A stretch of DNA of 64,000 nt from Felis catus (Eukaryota): positions 744,001 to 808,000 of the forward strand of contig NC_058381.1 of assembly GCF_018350175.1 (NCBI RefSeq), in the 5' to 3' direction. A model generated the notes under the pieces. That model was not told the DNA's origin. It was given only the letters and a program-made list of their open reading frames with translations, and made no database searches. Position 1 is the first letter of the stretch. The number at the start of each line of letters is the position of its first letter. Below, in pieces: positions 20,157-60,791 of this stretch. A program made the position numbers and the translations under genes.

Positions 20157-20693
20157 NNNNNNNNNNNNNNNNNNNNNNNNNNNNNNNNNNNNNNNNNNNN
20201 NNNNNNNNNNNNNNNNNNNNNNNNNNNNNNNNNNNNNNNNNNNNNNNNNNNNNNNNNNNNNNNNNNNNNNNNNNNNNNNNNNNNNNNNNNNNNNNNNNNN
20301 NNNNNNNNNNNNNNNNNNNNNNNNNNNNNNNNNNNNNNNNNNNNNNNNNNNNNTCCCTGCATCCNNNNNNNNNNNNNNNNNNNNNNNNNNNNNNNNNNNN
20401 NNNNNNNNNNNNNNNNNNNNNNNNNNNNNNNNNNNNNNNNNNNNNNNNNNNNNNNNNNNNNNNNNNNNNNNNNNNNNNNNNNNNNNNNNNNNNNNNNNNN
20501 NNNNNNNNNNNNNNNNNNNNNNNNNNNNNNNNNNNNNNNNNNNNNNNNNNNNNNNNNNNNNNNNNNNNNNNNNNNNNNNNNNNNNNNNNNNNNNNNNNNN
20601 NNNNNNNNNNNNNNNNNNNNNNNNNNNNNNNNNNNNNNNNNNNNNNNNNNNNNNNNNNNNNNNNNNNNNNNNNNNNNNNNNNNNNNNNNNNNN
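20157..20693. other. Assembly gap (N run) with an 11-bp called island at 20354-20364
   Basis: Seen directly. Confidence 0.99.
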
Positions 20694-54956: not shown

Positions 54957-55038
54957 TAAGGTTTCTCTCCCACTTGGCAGTAGATGAACACACATCCTTC
55001 ACTGACGTGCTTCAGCCCCTCTCGCACGACTGGCTCCG
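54957..55038 (-). CDS. TXNDC17: TXNDC17 exon 2 ([26 protein letters not shown])
   Basis: taaag|CG ... TA|gtaagt, 82 nt. Confidence 0.95.
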
Positions 55039-55429
55039 CTTTAAAACAAAAGTTGATATAAAATAATTACTCTTCGGCTCTAGAATCCGGCACCGAGGAA
55101 CAGCGTCCCTCCCCCCTCCCTTCCGTCTTCGCTCAAGTCCTCAGACTGTAACTGAGGTCGACCAGAAAACCACTTGAAGGCCGAGGGCCAAATCCGAGGG
55201 CAGATGGGCCCCCGCGCCACGGGCACCCAGAACGCTGCGGGGCGTCCTCGCTGACGGCGGACGACCGGCTCCCCTGTCCCGGACACACGAGGCGCACCGG
55301 GGTCGGGACAGGTGTTCGGGGACTGGATGCGCGCGGTATCCGGGTCGAGCGGCGGGGAGGGTCGGCGAGCCCCCTCGTCTGGCTCTCGCTCGGCTCCCAC
55401 GCCGCGGGCCCCGAGTCCCGGCCTCTCAC

Positions 55430-55574
55430 CCTGCACGCAGTCGGGGCACCAGCTCTTCCCGCCGGCGTCCTTGGAGCCGGTAAAGTAGGCGAAGATGGTC
55501 TTGCCGTGGTGCTGCTCCACCGCCCGGCTGAACTCCTCGAAGCCGGACACGCTCACCACCTCGTAGCCGGCCAT
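55430..55574 (-). CDS. TXNDC17: Thioredoxin domain-containing protein 17 (TRP14), exon 1 ([15 protein letters not shown]...[11 protein letters not shown])
   Basis: WCPDC active site diagnostic of TRP14; donor CAGG|gtgaga; 145 nt. The four exons sum to 372 nt = 123 aa + stop. Confidence 0.96.
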
Positions 55575-55903
55575 CGGGAGGGCGCGCCGCGCACCGCCGG
55601 CCGGGTCTCCGGGAGGCGCCGCCGCGGGACGGGGCGGGGAGCGGCCGCTTCCGGGGGCGCGGCCGGCGGGGCTCCACGGCGCTACGGGAGCCTGGGGCAG
55701 CCAGAAGGCCTCCGCGCCGCGTCCCGCCTCCGGCTGTGGCTGGCCCGTGCCCTCCGTGCTGGCTCTGCGCAGGCACCCGGGCTTCTGCCCCAGCCGCCCC
55801 GGCCCGGGCCCCATGGGCGGCGGCTGCCCACCCTGCCGCCGTGCAGCCCCGGGACCCCTAGGCGGCTCGGGAGCCCTAACGGCTCCCAGGCCGCCCTGCG
55901 CCC

Positions 55904-55917
55904 GTTGCTATGGCGAC
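55904..55917 (+). promoter_or_regulatory. RFX X-box (GTTGCTATGGCGAC)
   Basis: Near-palindromic match to the GTTGCCATGGCAAC consensus, typical of ciliary/centriolar gene promoters such as KIAA0753; followed by a possible exon-1 donor CAG|gtgggc at 55993. Confidence 0.6.
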
Positions 55918-56225
55918 CGCGCGAGCGGCCGGAAGCGCGGCCTAGCCGGTCCCCCCGCCCGCTCCCCGGTAGCCGCGCCGCGCCCCAGGCCAGGTGGGCT
56001 CGGGCCGGGGCCGGGGGGACTCTGGGAAGCCGCGCCCGGACTCGTGGGCCCGGGGGACAGGAGCCCCTGAGCCGCGGCCGGCCCCGCCGCTCGCGGGCCC
56101 CGTCACCGCCGCTCCTGCGGAGCTCGGGGGGCCGGGGCCGAGCGCGTGCGTGCGTGTGTGCGGCGGCCCCGGCGGCGGGCGGCGGGCGGGGGGCCGAGCG
56201 GGGCGGCGCGGGCGGGCCTGCAGCC

Positions 56226-57028
56226 ATGAGCGGGGCGGCGGGCCGCTGCGTGGGGCCCAGCCGGCCGGGGCGCGGGCGCGGGAGGCCGTGGGGGAAGAGG
56301 GGCGCCGCGGGGGCGCCGCGCGGCCGGGGAGCGGGGCGCCGGGCGACGACCTCGGCGTGGGACACGCGCTGCGTGAGCGCAGAGAGGCTGCGAGACTGTC
56401 GGCGGCCCCGGGGGAGGAGAGCGGAGGCCGACGCGGCCGGGGCGGCGGGGGCCAACGGGCCGGAGGCCTCGGAGACCGCCGGCGCCGCAGGCTCGGCGGA
56501 GGCCGCGGGGGACCCGGGCGCCGTGTGGGTGGACGGCGCGGTGGGGGAGCCCCAGGTGGTGGGGCCTGTCGGGTCGGTGTGGGTGACGGGCACCGGCGGG
56601 GAGGAGGACGGGGCGCCTTACCAGAGCCCCCGGGGCTGTGAGCGGAAAGGCCGCCCGGGATCCATGGGGCACGAGAGCATCCTGGAGCTGTGGCTGAAGG
56701 TGCAGGCTATGCGGGCGGCGGCGGGGTGCGGGGAGGGAAGCAGAGTGGAGCTCCACCCGGTGCCCGCGGGAGAGGGCCCGGTTGACAGGGGCGTCCCCGG
56801 CAGGGCCTCCTGGGTGGAGACGAGCCGGGGTGGTCTCACGGGGCCCTGGGTGAAGGGACAGGCTCGGGCAATGCCCCGGACCTCGGGAGTGTCCACAGGC
56901 GTTGGGCCCGGGGCGGGTTGTGAGAGGGTCCCAGGCCTGTGCGGGCGGGGACAGGCGGCTGGCCTGCTGCCTGGGGGTGTGCCTGGGATGGTGCCCTACC
57001 TGCTGGGGAGAGGACAGGCCGCGGGTGG
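56226..57028 (+). CDS. 5' half of an uncharacterised intronless Gly/Pro/Ala/Trp repeat ORF (MSGAAGRC...MGHESILELWLKVQAMRAA...GRGQAAG)
   Basis: gcagccATGa start, open frame; non-repetitive helix-like segment ESILELWLKVQAMRAA, then repeat units that continue in the -1 frame after ~57027. Confidence 0.5.
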
Positions 57029-59080
57029 CCCGCGCCTGTGGACAGGGAGAGGGGCTGGGGGAGTGCCCCTGGTCCGTGGGGCAGAGGGCAGTCCCTGCAG
57101 GTGCGGGGGGCTCCTGGCCCAGAGACCGTCTGTGGGGACACCCCGGGCTCATGGAGAGGGGGGCAGGCCTCGAGGGTGCTGCCTGATGCTGTGGGGGCGC
57201 CCGGCAGGGTGGAGGAGGAAGCCAGCTGTACAGGTGCCCTGGGCGCGTGGCACAACGGACAGGCCGTGGAGGGGATGGGGTCTGGGGGTGCTCCTGGCAC
57301 GTGGGGCACTGGACAGCCCGTGCGGGTGCCTTGTGCTGTTGAAGAGGAAGCTAGATGTGGGGGTGACCCAGGATTCAGGGAACGGGGGCAGGCTGTGTGG
57401 GTAGAGACCGGCTCTGGAGGGGACCCGGGTTCCTGGGCAGCCGCACACGCTGCAGAGGCATGCGGTCCTGCCGAGCTGCAGGTGGGCCCTGGAGGCGCTC
57501 CAGGCCTGTGGAGTGTGGAGCAGGGCCTGGGGGTGCCCACGGCCCTGGGGAGGGAGACGGGCTGCGGGAGCATCCCTGGTGTGTGGGGGACCCAGCAGCC
57601 GGTGGGGGCAGCGGTGGCGGGACCAGGGGCCCTGGGAGGACAGGCGGGTTACGGGGCTGCCCCAGGCCTGTGGGACGGGCAGCGGGCCCTGGGGGCGCCG
57701 GAGGTGGTTGTGGGGGACACAGGCTGTGGGGGTGTTGTGAGCCTGTGGGACGGGAGGCAGGCTCTGGGGGAGCAGGAGACCCTGCTGCCCGCAGCGTTGG
57801 GGGCACCCGGGCCTGCGGGTCAAGAGGCCAGCCCCAGGGACGTGTCTTGTCTGTGCAGAAGGAGACAGGCAGAGGGGCTGCCTGGGGCCGCAGTCCTGCC
57901 CAGGCACAGGTGCGGCCCGGGGGGGTTCACGAGGGCGCCTGTGGCCGTGCCCGCCGCCGTGTGGGTGTCCGGCTCCACGTGCCAGGATGGCAGCTCTCGA
58001 GGTGGCTTGAGCCTGTGCGACGGCGTCTCTGCTGCCCTGTTACCCGTGGCTCCCGAGGGGCCGTGGTCTGCGGGGGAGACTGCAGCTTCTGCAGCTTTCC
58101 CAGGCCCGTGGGAGAGGGGGCAGGCCATCGGGGGTCCTGAAGCGCCCGGGCTTGCGGGGCAGGAGACGGGCTCTGGGGGTGTGCCGAGACCTTGGGGACG
58201 GAGACCGAGTGCAGGGGCGTCTGCCGCTGCCCCGGTGCCCGTGGCTCCCAGGACGCCCCGGCCGGTCCGGGAGGAGTCCACCCCCGGGGGTGTCGCAGGC
58301 CTGTGGGGGGAGAGAGACACGGTACAAGCACCCGTAGACGCCAGGGGTCCCTCACGGATGGGGCTGCCCCCCAGCGCCGGGATGCCTGGGCCCACGGGGG
58401 AGAGGCTGGGCCCGGGGGGCCCCTCCGGCTCGCTGGGAGGGGGGCAGGCTGCTGAGATGCCTGGGGCCGAGGGGGTGCCCATGGCGGCGGGGGCCCCCGG
58501 GCCGATGATGGCCAATGCCAGCTGTGGGGATGTCTCGGGCGTGTGGGGACAGAGACCGGTGACGGAGGGACCTGTGGATGGCCCGTGGAGGAGAAGAGCC
58601 AGCGGGCCGGTCCCTGAGGCTGCCAGGGTGCCCCTCCCTTTGGGGGTGCTCGCGGCTGTGGGGGTGCCCGCCGCGGGGCGCGTGCCTGCCGTGGTGTGGG
58701 TGACTGGGTGTGCCGGGGAAGAAGCCGCTGAGGCTGCCGCCGGCCTCCCAGTGTCCGGGACGCCGTCTGCGGAGGGAGCTGGGGCTTCGTGGGGGGAGGC
58801 GGGAGGCAGACAGGCAGTGGGGGCGCCTCTTGCCCACGGGTGTGGGACCCGGTCCTGGAGCTGTCCGCGGCCCCCAGGGGAAGAGAGCCACTGTGAGAAC
58901 GTGCCTGCGGCCTCAGGGACAAGAGGCCCTGTGCCCCCGGTTGCAGGGCAGGAGACGGGCATCGGCCATTTCAGAGGTCACCTGCAGCAGAGTGGGGGGG
59001 CACAGACCGGAGGAGCGTCTGCAGTGAGGGTCCGGGGGAGCCCTTTGGGGGAGGACAGGTTGAGGGGGGCCTTCTCATAG
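57029..59080 (+). CDS. 3' half of the same repeat ORF (PAPVDRERGWGSAPGPWGRGQ...EDRLRGAFS*)
   Basis: Part of the 713-aa track ORF 56939-59080; recurring ETGxGGxPGxWGxGQAxGxP motif kept in one frame for ~2 kb. Confidence 0.5.
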   Translation, partial: PAPVDRERGWGSAPGPWGRGQSLQVRGAPGPETVCGDTPGSWRGGQASRVLPDAVGAPGRVEEEASCTGALGAWHNGQAVEGMGSGGAPGTWGTGQPVRVPCAVEEEARCGGDPGFRERGQAVWVETGSGGDPGSWAAAHAAEACGPAELQVGPGGAPGLWSVEQGLGVPTALGRETGCGSIPGVWGTQQPVGAAVAGPGALGGQAGYGAAPGLWDGQRALGAPEVVVGDTGCGGVVSLWDGRQALGEQETLLPAALGAPGPAGQEASPRDVSCLCRRRQAEGLPGAAVLPRHRCGPGGFTRAPVAVPAAVWVSGSTCQDGSSRGGLSLCDGVSAALLPVAPEGPWSAGETAASAAFPGPWERGQAIGGPEAPGLAGQETGSGGVPRPWGRRPSAGASAAAPVPVAPRTPRPVREESTPGGVAGLWGERDTVQAPVDARGPSRMGLPPSAGMPGPTGERLGPGGPSGSLGGGQAAEMPGAEGVPMAAGAPGPMMANASCGDVSGVWGQRPVTEGPVDGPWRRRASGPVPEAARVPLPLGVLAAVGVPAAGRVPAVVWVTGCAGEEAAEAAAGLPVSGTPSAEGAGASWGEAGGRQAVGAPLAHGCGTRSWSCPRPPGEESHCENVPAASGTRGPVPPVAGQETGIGHFRGHLQQSGGAQTGGASAVRVRGSPLGEDRLRGAFS

Positions 59081-60641
59081 CACGTGTAGGGAACGGGGTG
59101 GGGGGTGTCCTGGGCTCTTTGGGAGGGGACAGGCTGGGGGGAGGTTGGTCCTGGGTTGTAGACGGAGGCGCAGGCCGTAGGGGTGTCTTGGGGATCTGGG
59201 ACAGATGCTTTGTGGAGGCTTCCTGGGTCTATCGGGTGACAAGTTAGGAGGTGTCCTGGAGCAGTGGGGAAGGGACAGGTTGCAGAGAGAGGGGCGTCCC
59301 AGGAATGTGTATAGGGGAACAGTGGGGTGGGTGTCACTGGACTCTGTGTACGTGTGTGTGTGTGTGTGTGTCAGTCACTCGAGGTATCCTGCAACGGGGG
59401 GCCGGGGCGGGGGGGGGGGGGGCGGTCACCTTGTGTTTCCCTAGTGCAGCCCTGAGTCCTAGGCCTTTGGCTTCTGGGGAAGGTGTCGGCCACATAGAAC
59501 TCGCAGGGGCCCCGGCCCCAGCTCTGCGGGCTCCTCCGTTCTGCGGCGGCTGCCCTGGACTGTGGTGACCGTGGTGACCAAAGCCAGCGGGACTGCCTCG
59601 CTCCCGTGCCCTCCCGTCTTCGTTGTCGCTCTCGTCTCTGCAGCTGTGGGAACAGGGAATCTTGAACAGCTGCCCTTCAGTTCCTACACGTGTATCTGTC
59701 TTGAAGCAAATCCAGTCTACAGACCTTGAGTTTACTCAAAAGCTTAAATTAGGGATTTTTTTTTTTTTAAACCTGGATTTCCCAATTGATTTGCTGTAGG
59801 ATTCTTTGAGAGCACAAACACACCAGTACATCTAAAATGAATCGGTTTGTGGAAAATCAGCTTAATTCAACAGACGTTGAGTTCAATTATCTGCTCTGCT
59901 CAAAACCCTGTATTGTGGGGAATCTCAGAGCAGCGGGACCGGGCCCGGCCCCCCGGGAAGCTGGCATAGCTGGAAGGCTGGGGCCTGGCCGTGAAGTAGG
60001 TCAATAACAGAGACCGGTGTGTGGTCGGCACGCCCCGAGGCAGGCGTGATCGGCGTCTGAGGAGGCGGTCCGAGACAGCGGGGTGAGCGCGGCCACGTCC
60101 CTACAAATCCTGACAAAACGCTTTCCGGGCTGTCAGCTCACGGGGTGCGTGTGGGGGGTGTGGGGTTGCAGGTCTGGGGCCCTTCCGCTACTCAGTGGCA
60201 GATCCTGGCAGGGATCTCGGTGTTCTGACCCCGAGGCCTCACCCGGAGCCGGTCGGCTCTGCCCTGCCGAGCTAGCCCAGGGAGTGAGCACGCTGCCCTT
60301 CGCCGAGTGGCTAGGGTTTGCTCACGCAGACTGTGAGCAGAAGGCTGCCTGGTTCCCGTGGCAGAACCGTTTCTGGAGTAACGCCTCACTGGTGGCCCTT
60401 GAGGTTTGGGCTCAACGGGTAGCCACTCACACGGTGTCCCCCGTTCTCTTGGAAAGGAGGATTCCAAAAGGGAAGACACTTTTGTGGAGGACCCTGGCCG
60501 GTACCTTCCCGGAGTACCCGCTGGTCAGCGCGAGGCTGCTGCGGGCCTCCTCTAGAGTACTGTCCTCTGAGGGTGGCATGGTGTCCCCTCCTTCCGGTGT
60601 TTGATCGCCCTTAGTCTGAAAGCAACCTCCTCCCGTTGCAG

Positions 60642-60791
60642 GCGATGACCGATGACCGATGACCGTAGGTGGGCTCTCGCCAGCGCTCCGCCCTCTGACG
60701 GAACGGGCCGGGGCAGGCCGGCTCCCCGCCGTGCTCATCTAGCCTGGCGTCCCACTGGACGGGAGGAGTGACCAGCCAGCGCCAGACCCAG
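60642..60791 (+). other. KIAA0753: Degenerate homologue of the first coding exon of KIAA0753 (moonraker/OFIP); start codon lost and frameshifted
   Basis: ttgcag| acceptor and CAG|gtact donor. Reads ACG-G-R-G-R-P-A-P-R-R-A-H-L-A / L-D-G-R-S-D / Q-T-Q against the remembered human N-terminus [31 protein letters not shown]. Syntenic position and strand fit. Confidence 0.65.

Follow-up and report, generated by a model that had tools for sequence, protein, structure and literature searches.

Within a 64,000-nucleotide (nt) stretch of the Felis catus genome (RefSeq assembly GCF_018350175.1, contig NC_058381.1, forward-strand positions 744,001 to 808,000; hereafter "the window", whose own numbering is used throughout), the plus-strand segment 56226-59080 very probably holds the cat orthologue of an uncharacterised protein-coding gene confined to placental mammals. 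In this assembly the gene appears as two overlapping plus-strand open reading frames (ORFs), 55506-57404 (632 amino acids, aa) and 56939-59080 (713 aa), which lie in different frames and form the two halves of one frame of 951 codons plus stop once a single base is added. A first-pass annotation made from the sequence alone had described this pair of ORFs and their common peptide repeat, and had proposed that a real, intronless gene of about 951 codons is hidden by one missing base, with a start at ATG 56226 and a stop at TAG 59078-59080. The ORF coordinates and the repeat were recovered here, and the proposal itself is borne out by an intact 951-aa tiger model with the same start and stop and by intact orthologues in more than 65 clusters of placental proteins. 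That annotation did not recognise it as a named gene; it is nevertheless not a new one, since RefSeq, Ensembl, UniProt, and OpenProt all carry it already, with names that are uninformative or wrong, and its human protein has been detected by mass spectrometry (MS).

The best match of the 713-aa ORF in a protein cluster search was a Panthera tigris RefSeq protein, XP_042823112.1 ("collagen alpha-1(I) chain-like", 951 aa), which is identical in length to the repaired frame read from ATG 56226 (context gcagccATGa). The upstream ORF, read from this ATG, aligned with tiger residues 1-269 at 98% identity (263/269), and the downstream ORF aligned with tiger residues 267-951 at 96% identity (657/685), both with 0 gaps; protein divergence from the tiger is 3.6%, compared with 0.7% between tiger and jaguar, as befits a cat outside Panthera. 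On this alignment the gene consists of a part A (56226-57025, plus strand), which holds codons 1-267, the last of them without its third base, and a part B (57026-59080, plus strand), which holds codons 268-951 and the TAG. Part B is further matched by a 601-aa European Nucleotide Archive protein (P0053), 99.3% identical to 57275-59077, which stops short of the frameshift site.

Since ORFs of 100-380 aa are present in all six frames of the surrounding region, ORF length alone is little proof here: GC content ranges from 0.63 to 0.86 over 55000-59500, and GC skew from 0.17 to 0.43 between 56000 and 59500, reflecting an excess of G on the plus strand. The long stop-free stretches are found at 55149-57402 in frame +2 and at 56921-59078 in frame +1, and the remaining plus-strand frame and the three minus-strand frames meet stops every 100-1200 nt. 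For 56921-59080, dinucleotide-preserving shuffles led us to expect ~12.5 stops per plus-strand frame versus 0 internal stops observed; when all six frames were counted, shuffles attained 718 codons in 1.15% of trials, chiefly on the minus strand. Antisense ORFs within 56103-58962 (minus strand, 245-380 aa, e.g., 57820-58962 with 380 aa and 56103-57152 with 349 aa) were set aside as composition artefacts, because the shuffles predict such lengths on the C-rich strand (~5 stops per frame in 2.16 kb).

The search with the 713-aa ORF returned 50 protein clusters of ~900-1200 aa (E = 0 down to 1e-60), all from placental mammals, and a second search restricted to residues 95-215 returned 65. Their members include felids, hyaenas, canids, bears, seals, mustelids, bats, horse, pigs, ruminants, cetaceans, shrews, and a mole, together with lemurs, monkeys, gibbons, colugo, rabbit, pika, many rodents, elephant, tenrecs, and armadillo, so that all four placental superorders are represented. 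The first-pass annotation had pointed to an intact ORF of ~900-1000 aa at the syntenic site in other carnivores or ungulates as evidence to look for; intact orthologues of 900-1200 aa occur in both groups. Among the named orthologues are human AC004706.3 (OpenProt IP_250569), mouse LOC122526781 (RefSeq NP_001382938.1, "uncharacterized protein LOC122526781", 962 aa; UniProt A0A0N4SUT6), rat XP_063126196.1, and the tiger protein. They are colinear over their full length, with a common start region, an invariant core and helix, the same layout of tryptophan (Trp) repeats, and a GEDRLRGAF-type end.

In an alignment of 30 placental species, 35 columns were invariant and ~100 were conserved at ≥90%. 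Conservation was highest in the core, residues 97-212 (56514-56861, plus strand), which holds 34 of the 35 invariant columns and reached a mean of 0.83, compared with 0.61 for the N-terminus, 0.52 for the repeats, and 0.53 for the C-terminal 50 residues. Core identity to the tiger ranged from 67 to 98% across the 65 clusters; the cat residues 97-212 match the tiger exactly and include all 34 invariant core columns. At the other end of the protein, comparison with orthologues defines a C-terminal segment (58925-59077, plus strand) with a conserved stop position: the cat frame ends in ...GEDRLRGAFS followed by TAG, a GEDRLRGAF(Q)-type end is found in most orthologues, and the stop stands at the same place from tenrec to primates.

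Length differences between closely related species are all in-frame insertions or deletions (indels). The macaque and gibbon proteins, for instance, differ at 8.8% of residues (91.2% identity), and their 1141 aa align with 0 indels. Hominoids and Old World monkeys diverge by ~6.5% across the genome, and we infer, rather than measure, that 3.4 kb of neutral DNA at such a divergence would carry some 20 indels. Within the repeats, Trp columns were conserved at 0.77 versus a mean of 0.525, a value reached in 0 of 20,000 permutations. Trp is thus the best-conserved residue there, whereas neutral decay of a repeat that contains TGG would have the opposite effect. Judged from these comparisons, the reading frame has been maintained across placental mammals. 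When a profile built from the 30 species was run against 1.84 billion representative proteins, only 30 matches were obtained, all of them orthologues or their fragments. The family thus appears to lack a detectable paralogue or non-placental relative, with the proviso that searching proteins misses genes that are not annotated. No host-derived contig came out of a metagenome scan for the felid-specific repeat region. Literature searches found no papers on LOC122526781, A0A0N4SUT6, LOC134480818, or ENST00000634965, and no functional study of this gene.

Evidence of expression comes from a study that searched the affinity-purification data of BioPlex anew against OpenProt (PMC10787177, Genomics Proteomics Bioinformatics 2022). 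Table S1 of that study lists IP_250569 as a 1178-aa product of AC004706.3 (biotype TEC; transcript ENST00000634965, a single coding sequence), which 11 further MS studies and 2 translation studies (ribosome profiling) had also detected. The human protein was recovered from HEK293T affinity purifications with transcription-factor and ribosomal-protein baits, namely as prey of NEUROG3 (10 unique peptides) and RPS2 (4 peptides), and three of its peptides were re-measured as synthetic standards (PMC10787177). The MS peptides that the first-pass annotation had suggested looking for are therefore on record, with at least 10 unique ones for the human orthologue (PMC10787177). In the gibbon and macaque orthologues, both 1141 aa long, we located five of the IP_250569 peptides (residues 188, 233, 438, 945, and 1123), each being exact in at least one of these two species. 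One corresponds to cat residues 174-188 with one substitution and another to a segment of part B with two, and the five extend from the core almost to the C-terminus, ending about six residues short of it. These peptides show full-length translation of the human orthologue. In mouse, Gm43951 (ENSMUSG00000107877) was met only in differential-expression tables for heart and endothelium, and its link to the gene is solely the UniRef name "Gm43951 protein" given to the Phodopus (hamster) orthologue.

Several observations weigh against a functional coding gene or temper what can be claimed for it. Constraint outside the core is weak: identity between orders is only 40-60%, and an overall ratio of non-synonymous to synonymous substitution rates (dN/dS) of roughly 0.5 is estimated from the macaque-gibbon protein divergence. 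Nor is GC content at third codon positions elevated in the repeat half (0.73, versus 0.75 at first positions). No AATAAA or ATTAAA was found on the plus strand between the ORF stop and the end of the window. Recovery with the NEUROG3 and RPS2 baits could reflect the stickiness of a disordered prey, and the adaptor role considered below is drawn from composition and conservation only.

The encoded protein combines a basic N-terminus, the conserved core, and a long repetitive region. Its Arg/Gly-rich N-terminal segment (residues 1-96; 56226-56513, plus strand), is followed by a periodic Ala/Gly stretch, with Tandem Repeats Finder (TRF) periods of 24-30 nt. The isoelectric point (pI) of these 96 residues is 11.7 in the tiger orthologue; the C-terminal 51 residues are basic too (pI 11.4), and the rest is nearly neutral (pI 5.4-6.2). 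The 116-residue core carries the motifs VWVxG ... VWVTG ... HESILELWLKVQAMR ... SWVET ... GPWVKGQ. Beyond it lies the degenerate 25-aa (75-nt) Gly/Pro/Trp repeat region (residues ~215-900, 22 Trp; 56869-58924, plus strand), which was defined by spacing and autocorrelation. Start-to-start spacings in the DNA are 75, 150, 87, and 162 nt, and autocorrelation peaks at lag 75 (z = 3.7) and lag 37/38 (z = 3.9); TRF reported no array in 56900-59100, where unit identity (~63-75%) is too low for this program. The whole protein contains 29 Trp and ~20 units of the type G(C/S)GGxPGxW(G/D/E)xGQAxG.P. A second motif, [AVS][VSA]-W-V-x-[GT], occurs in six copies, at residues 99, 117, 194, 390, 578, and 823; W119 and W196 within these copies are invariant, and W101, W580, and W825 are conserved at ≥90%.

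An AlphaFold2 model computed from an alignment of 30 sequences gave a per-residue confidence (pLDDT) below 50 for 916 of the 951 residues, while the only 10-residue blocks of high confidence, which contain a single helix, had means of ~81. Disorder is thus predicted for nearly the whole chain, the sole structured element of the model being a conserved amphipathic helix at residues 152-166 (ILELWLKVQAMRAAA; 56679-56723, plus strand). The first-pass annotation had called the segment around MGHESILELWLKVQAMRAA amphipathic-looking and had envisaged a disordered chain with regularly spaced Trp. Both descriptions agree with these results, since that segment falls in the most conserved part of the protein and coincides with its only confidently predicted helix, and the Trp residues of the otherwise disordered model have a modal spacing of 25 aa. 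Neither half of the cat gene nor the tiger protein matched a Pfam family at E ≤ 1, a sequence profile search of the PDB returned no relative, and the best score obtained with the core in the ESM Atlas (0.75) was below the useful range.

The gene lies head-to-head with TXNDC17, as the first-pass annotation had stated: the coding part of TXNDC17 exon 1 is found at 55434-55574 on the minus strand (Pfam PF06110, TXD17-like_Trx, E = 1.8e-12), and its ATG (55574-55572) is 650 nt from ATG 56226. A CpG island (55000-56800, identified by composition; GC content 0.61-0.85, observed-to-expected CpG ratio 0.8-1.08) is shared between the two, covering the TXNDC17 start, the presumed plus-strand promoter, and the first ~190 codons of the ORF, while the repeats have a CpG ratio of 0.43-0.66, as in a gene body. 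The RFX box that had also been announced upstream is present as a putative site, an X-box-like palindrome, GTTGCTATGGCGAC, at 55904-55917 (plus strand; pattern match), 309 nt upstream of the ATG; it is the single exact match to GTTGCYATGGCRAC in the 64 kb, where 0.10 would be expected by chance. ATG 56226 is the first plus-strand ATG downstream of 55910. A donor-like CAG|GTGGGC at 55994, which follows the X-box by 77 nt and precedes ATG 56226 by 232 nt, is a candidate for the end of a short non-coding exon 1 of KIAA0753, and no donor of the GTRAGT class occurs in 55600-59800. Further downstream, a KIAA0753 exon-like segment (60642-60791) has AG and GT borders and a stop in every frame before the donor; at 60643-60665, a 7-nt tandem repeat (CGATGAC, 3.3 copies) supplies three ATGs, each running into a stop. 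These features are consistent with a canonical KIAA0753 start exon that is disabled in this genome. The ORF thus sits between the promoter region and this exon-like segment, a layout that fits its proposed nesting within KIAA0753 intron 1. In UniProt the mouse protein stands under 4933427D14Rik, as Kiaa0753 is called in that species, a hint that the locus is the same there.

Other features of the locus bear on its annotation and assembly. In a pangolin model labelled low quality (P0050; Smutsia gigantea KAK2488563.1), ~145 residues of the repeat protein are fused to KIAA0753 (PF15718), so the two neighbouring genes can evidently become joined in automatic annotation; we rejected this model as evidence of a fusion transcript, as it matches the window only in the repeats and carries that label. 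Just downstream of the ORF, a (GT)10 microsatellite (59352-59371) is followed by a ~27-nt G-rich, homopolymer-like run (59396-59422), and sequence such as 59352-59425 degrades nearby read quality and assembly accuracy. The window also contains two N runs (20157-20353 and 20365-20693), corresponding to an assembly gap or masked sequence.

Could the open frame be a non-coding by-product of a decayed G-rich minisatellite, whose 75-nt period is a multiple of three by chance? Several properties of GC-rich minisatellite DNA are indeed found here, including the degenerate 75-nt period with its 37/38-nt sub-period, a G skew of 0.17-0.30, and repeat-like units that run on past the stop, out of frame and at a spacing of 146 nt (59098-59289, plus strand; repeat families D3 and D13), in a presumed 3' untranslated region or intron. 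The ORFs found in all six frames, as well as the shuffles that reach 718 codons mostly on the minus strand, point in the same direction. Unlike in such DNA, however, the units at this locus are fixed at orthologous positions in one conserved frame, with an identity of only ~63-75%, and what was found is not a tandem array devoid of a conserved frame. The absence of internal stops where ~12.5 per plus-strand frame are expected, the exclusively in-frame indels, the frame, start region, stop, Trp positions, and 116-aa core conserved across all placental superorders, and the human peptides covering the whole ORF make a non-coding by-product very unlikely. An exact Jeffreys minisatellite core was looked for and rejected (0 matches). 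As to how a coding sequence of this kind arose, one may speculate that the units past the stop and the 37/38-nt sub-period are compatible with a minisatellite origin.

With a coding gene retained as the preferred interpretation, two further questions concern the state of the cat copy and the transcript that carries it. Compared with its orthologues, this copy differs by a 1-nt deletion and is therefore not a single uninterrupted ORF in the present assembly. Relative to Panthera, the tiger alignment places the missing base between 57025 and 57026 (plus strand, context GCGGG^TGGCCC), where the two halves abut at GRGQAAG|WPAPVDRE: the Gly267 codon is reduced to GG at 57024-57025 and the Trp268 codon TGG begins at 57026, so that exactly one base, the third of the Gly267 codon, is lacking. 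The junction Trp is the conserved Trp of "GWPEAV" in other mammals. The first-pass annotation had thus rightly located the frame change within 57018-57034; the T that it inserted to restore G-V-P did not hold, as the alignment gives G-W-P, with the lesion 1-2 nt further upstream. Feliform proteins are also ~150-200 aa shorter than those of most other orders, partly through a repeat-unit deletion located exactly at this junction. We consider it probable that the missing base is an assembly or consensus error, or else a very recent or polymorphic lesion, rather than an old fixed inactivation, because neither half shows any other indel or stop when compared with the tiger; the site is a short G run within ~75% GC sequence, where consensus errors are, we infer, common. 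A genuine frameshift that has become fixed in this lineage of felids seems doubtful, yet is by no means far-fetched. The gene would then be a young pseudogene, or would encode a truncated 392-aa product (residues 1-267 followed by ~125 out-of-frame residues up to the stop at 57402-57404) that keeps the Arg/Gly-rich end and the conserved core and loses the Trp repeats. The deletion is, after all, present in the assembly sequence, and the felid cluster at 90% identity comprises three Panthera models, one unnamed fragment, and no other cat, which could mean that annotators skip the gene where it is broken; in addition, one mustelid and one fur seal model are flagged LOW QUALITY, suggesting that lesions or errors recur at this GC-rich locus. 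However, an old inactivation should have gathered more lesions than the single one seen over 2.85 kb at 3.6% protein divergence, and missing models are weak evidence given that, even among Panthera species, automatic pipelines predict this gene only patchily. As for the transcript, the ORF may conceivably be translated from a KIAA0753-promoter transcript that is unspliced or has a long first exon, and not belong to an independent nested gene, an arrangement to which we lean somewhat less than to its opposite. One RFX-driven promoter would then yield either KIAA0753 mRNA, with intron 1 removed, or the ORF, with intron 1 retained. In its favour are the lack of a canonical poly(A) signal downstream and the UniProt entries for mouse, Mus spicilegus, and Nannospalax proteins under "4933427D14Rik"; it also accords with the position of ATG 56226 as the first ATG downstream of the X-box region, with the donor-like site at 55994 upstream of it, and with the exon-like segment downstream. 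On the other hand, in mouse, rat, and many further species RefSeq gives the ORF a LOC gene identifier of its own, and the human model is a separate TEC gene.

If the coding gene is accepted, its composition and conservation tentatively suggest a multivalent adaptor or scaffold. The basic, Arg/Gly-rich N-terminus would target the protein to RNA or to the nucleus or nucleolus, which would fit the RPS2 and NEUROG3 baits, and the invariant core, with its helix and VWVxG/WVET motifs, may dock a specific partner. The ~25 short Trp-centred motifs, set ~25 residues apart in Gly/Pro spacers, could provide numerous weak contacts, acting as Arg-Trp stickers or else as ligands that fit Trp-binding pockets. 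A more far-reaching scenario, which we regard as improbable, is that this ~1000-aa protein arose de novo in the placental ancestor from a ~37/75-nt GC-rich minisatellite in the first intron of KIAA0753, is expressed from the shared, RFX-controlled bidirectional promoter when intron 1 is retained, and acts as a multivalent Trp scaffold (for pockets such as those of Argonaute or CNOT9) or forms Arg-Trp condensates at nuclear sites or sites of ribosome biogenesis. Were this true, it would represent a large gene born de novo, with a testable mechanism and an inherent switch by which either it or its host gene is expressed.

Irrespective of mechanism, a large protein kept by all placental orders for ~100 million years could be recovered here from raw sequence alone, and the human gene is still "TEC" or a long non-coding RNA in the annotation cited by PMC10787177, while its counterparts are called "collagen-like" or "mucin-19" in other species. 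In the cat, a single gene model that flags the frameshift should replace the two overlapping ORFs, and collagen names should not be passed on. With an invariant 116-residue core containing one helix, ~25 conserved Trp motifs, and an otherwise disordered chain, the protein is a promising "dark proteome" candidate. Its position may further imply co-regulation or competition with the ciliopathy gene KIAA0753 at a shared RFX promoter, and the presence of the ORF there is relevant to anyone engineering 5' alleles of KIAA0753.

The family was also compared with known protein classes. Like fibrillar collagens, it is rich in Gly, Pro, and Ala; unlike them, it has no G-X-Y array and no evident signal peptide. 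We therefore rejected collagen membership (the longest G-X-Y run is 3-5 triplets, and no Pfam match was obtained, collagen included), and the "collagen-like" name is a composition artefact. Elastin and spidroins, to which the first-pass annotation had likened the protein, are similarly low-complexity, repetitive, disordered, and rich in Gly, Pro, Ala, and Val, and the likeness holds for composition and not beyond it, as the repeat unit here is centred on Trp, has no Pfam match, and occupies orthologous positions in every species instead of being homogenised. With the Ago-hook regions of GW182/TNRC6, finally, the protein shares a long, disordered, Gly-rich region with ~30 conserved Trp and spacers of ≥10 residues; 9 WG and 2 GW dipeptides occur among its 29 Trp, all in sequence predicted to be disordered. 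It differs from GW182/TNRC6 in showing no homology and no Ago_hook, UBA, RRM, or PAM2 domain, and in its dominant Trp context, which is P-G-x-W and not G/S/N-W-G, so that the likeness between the two is one of layout.

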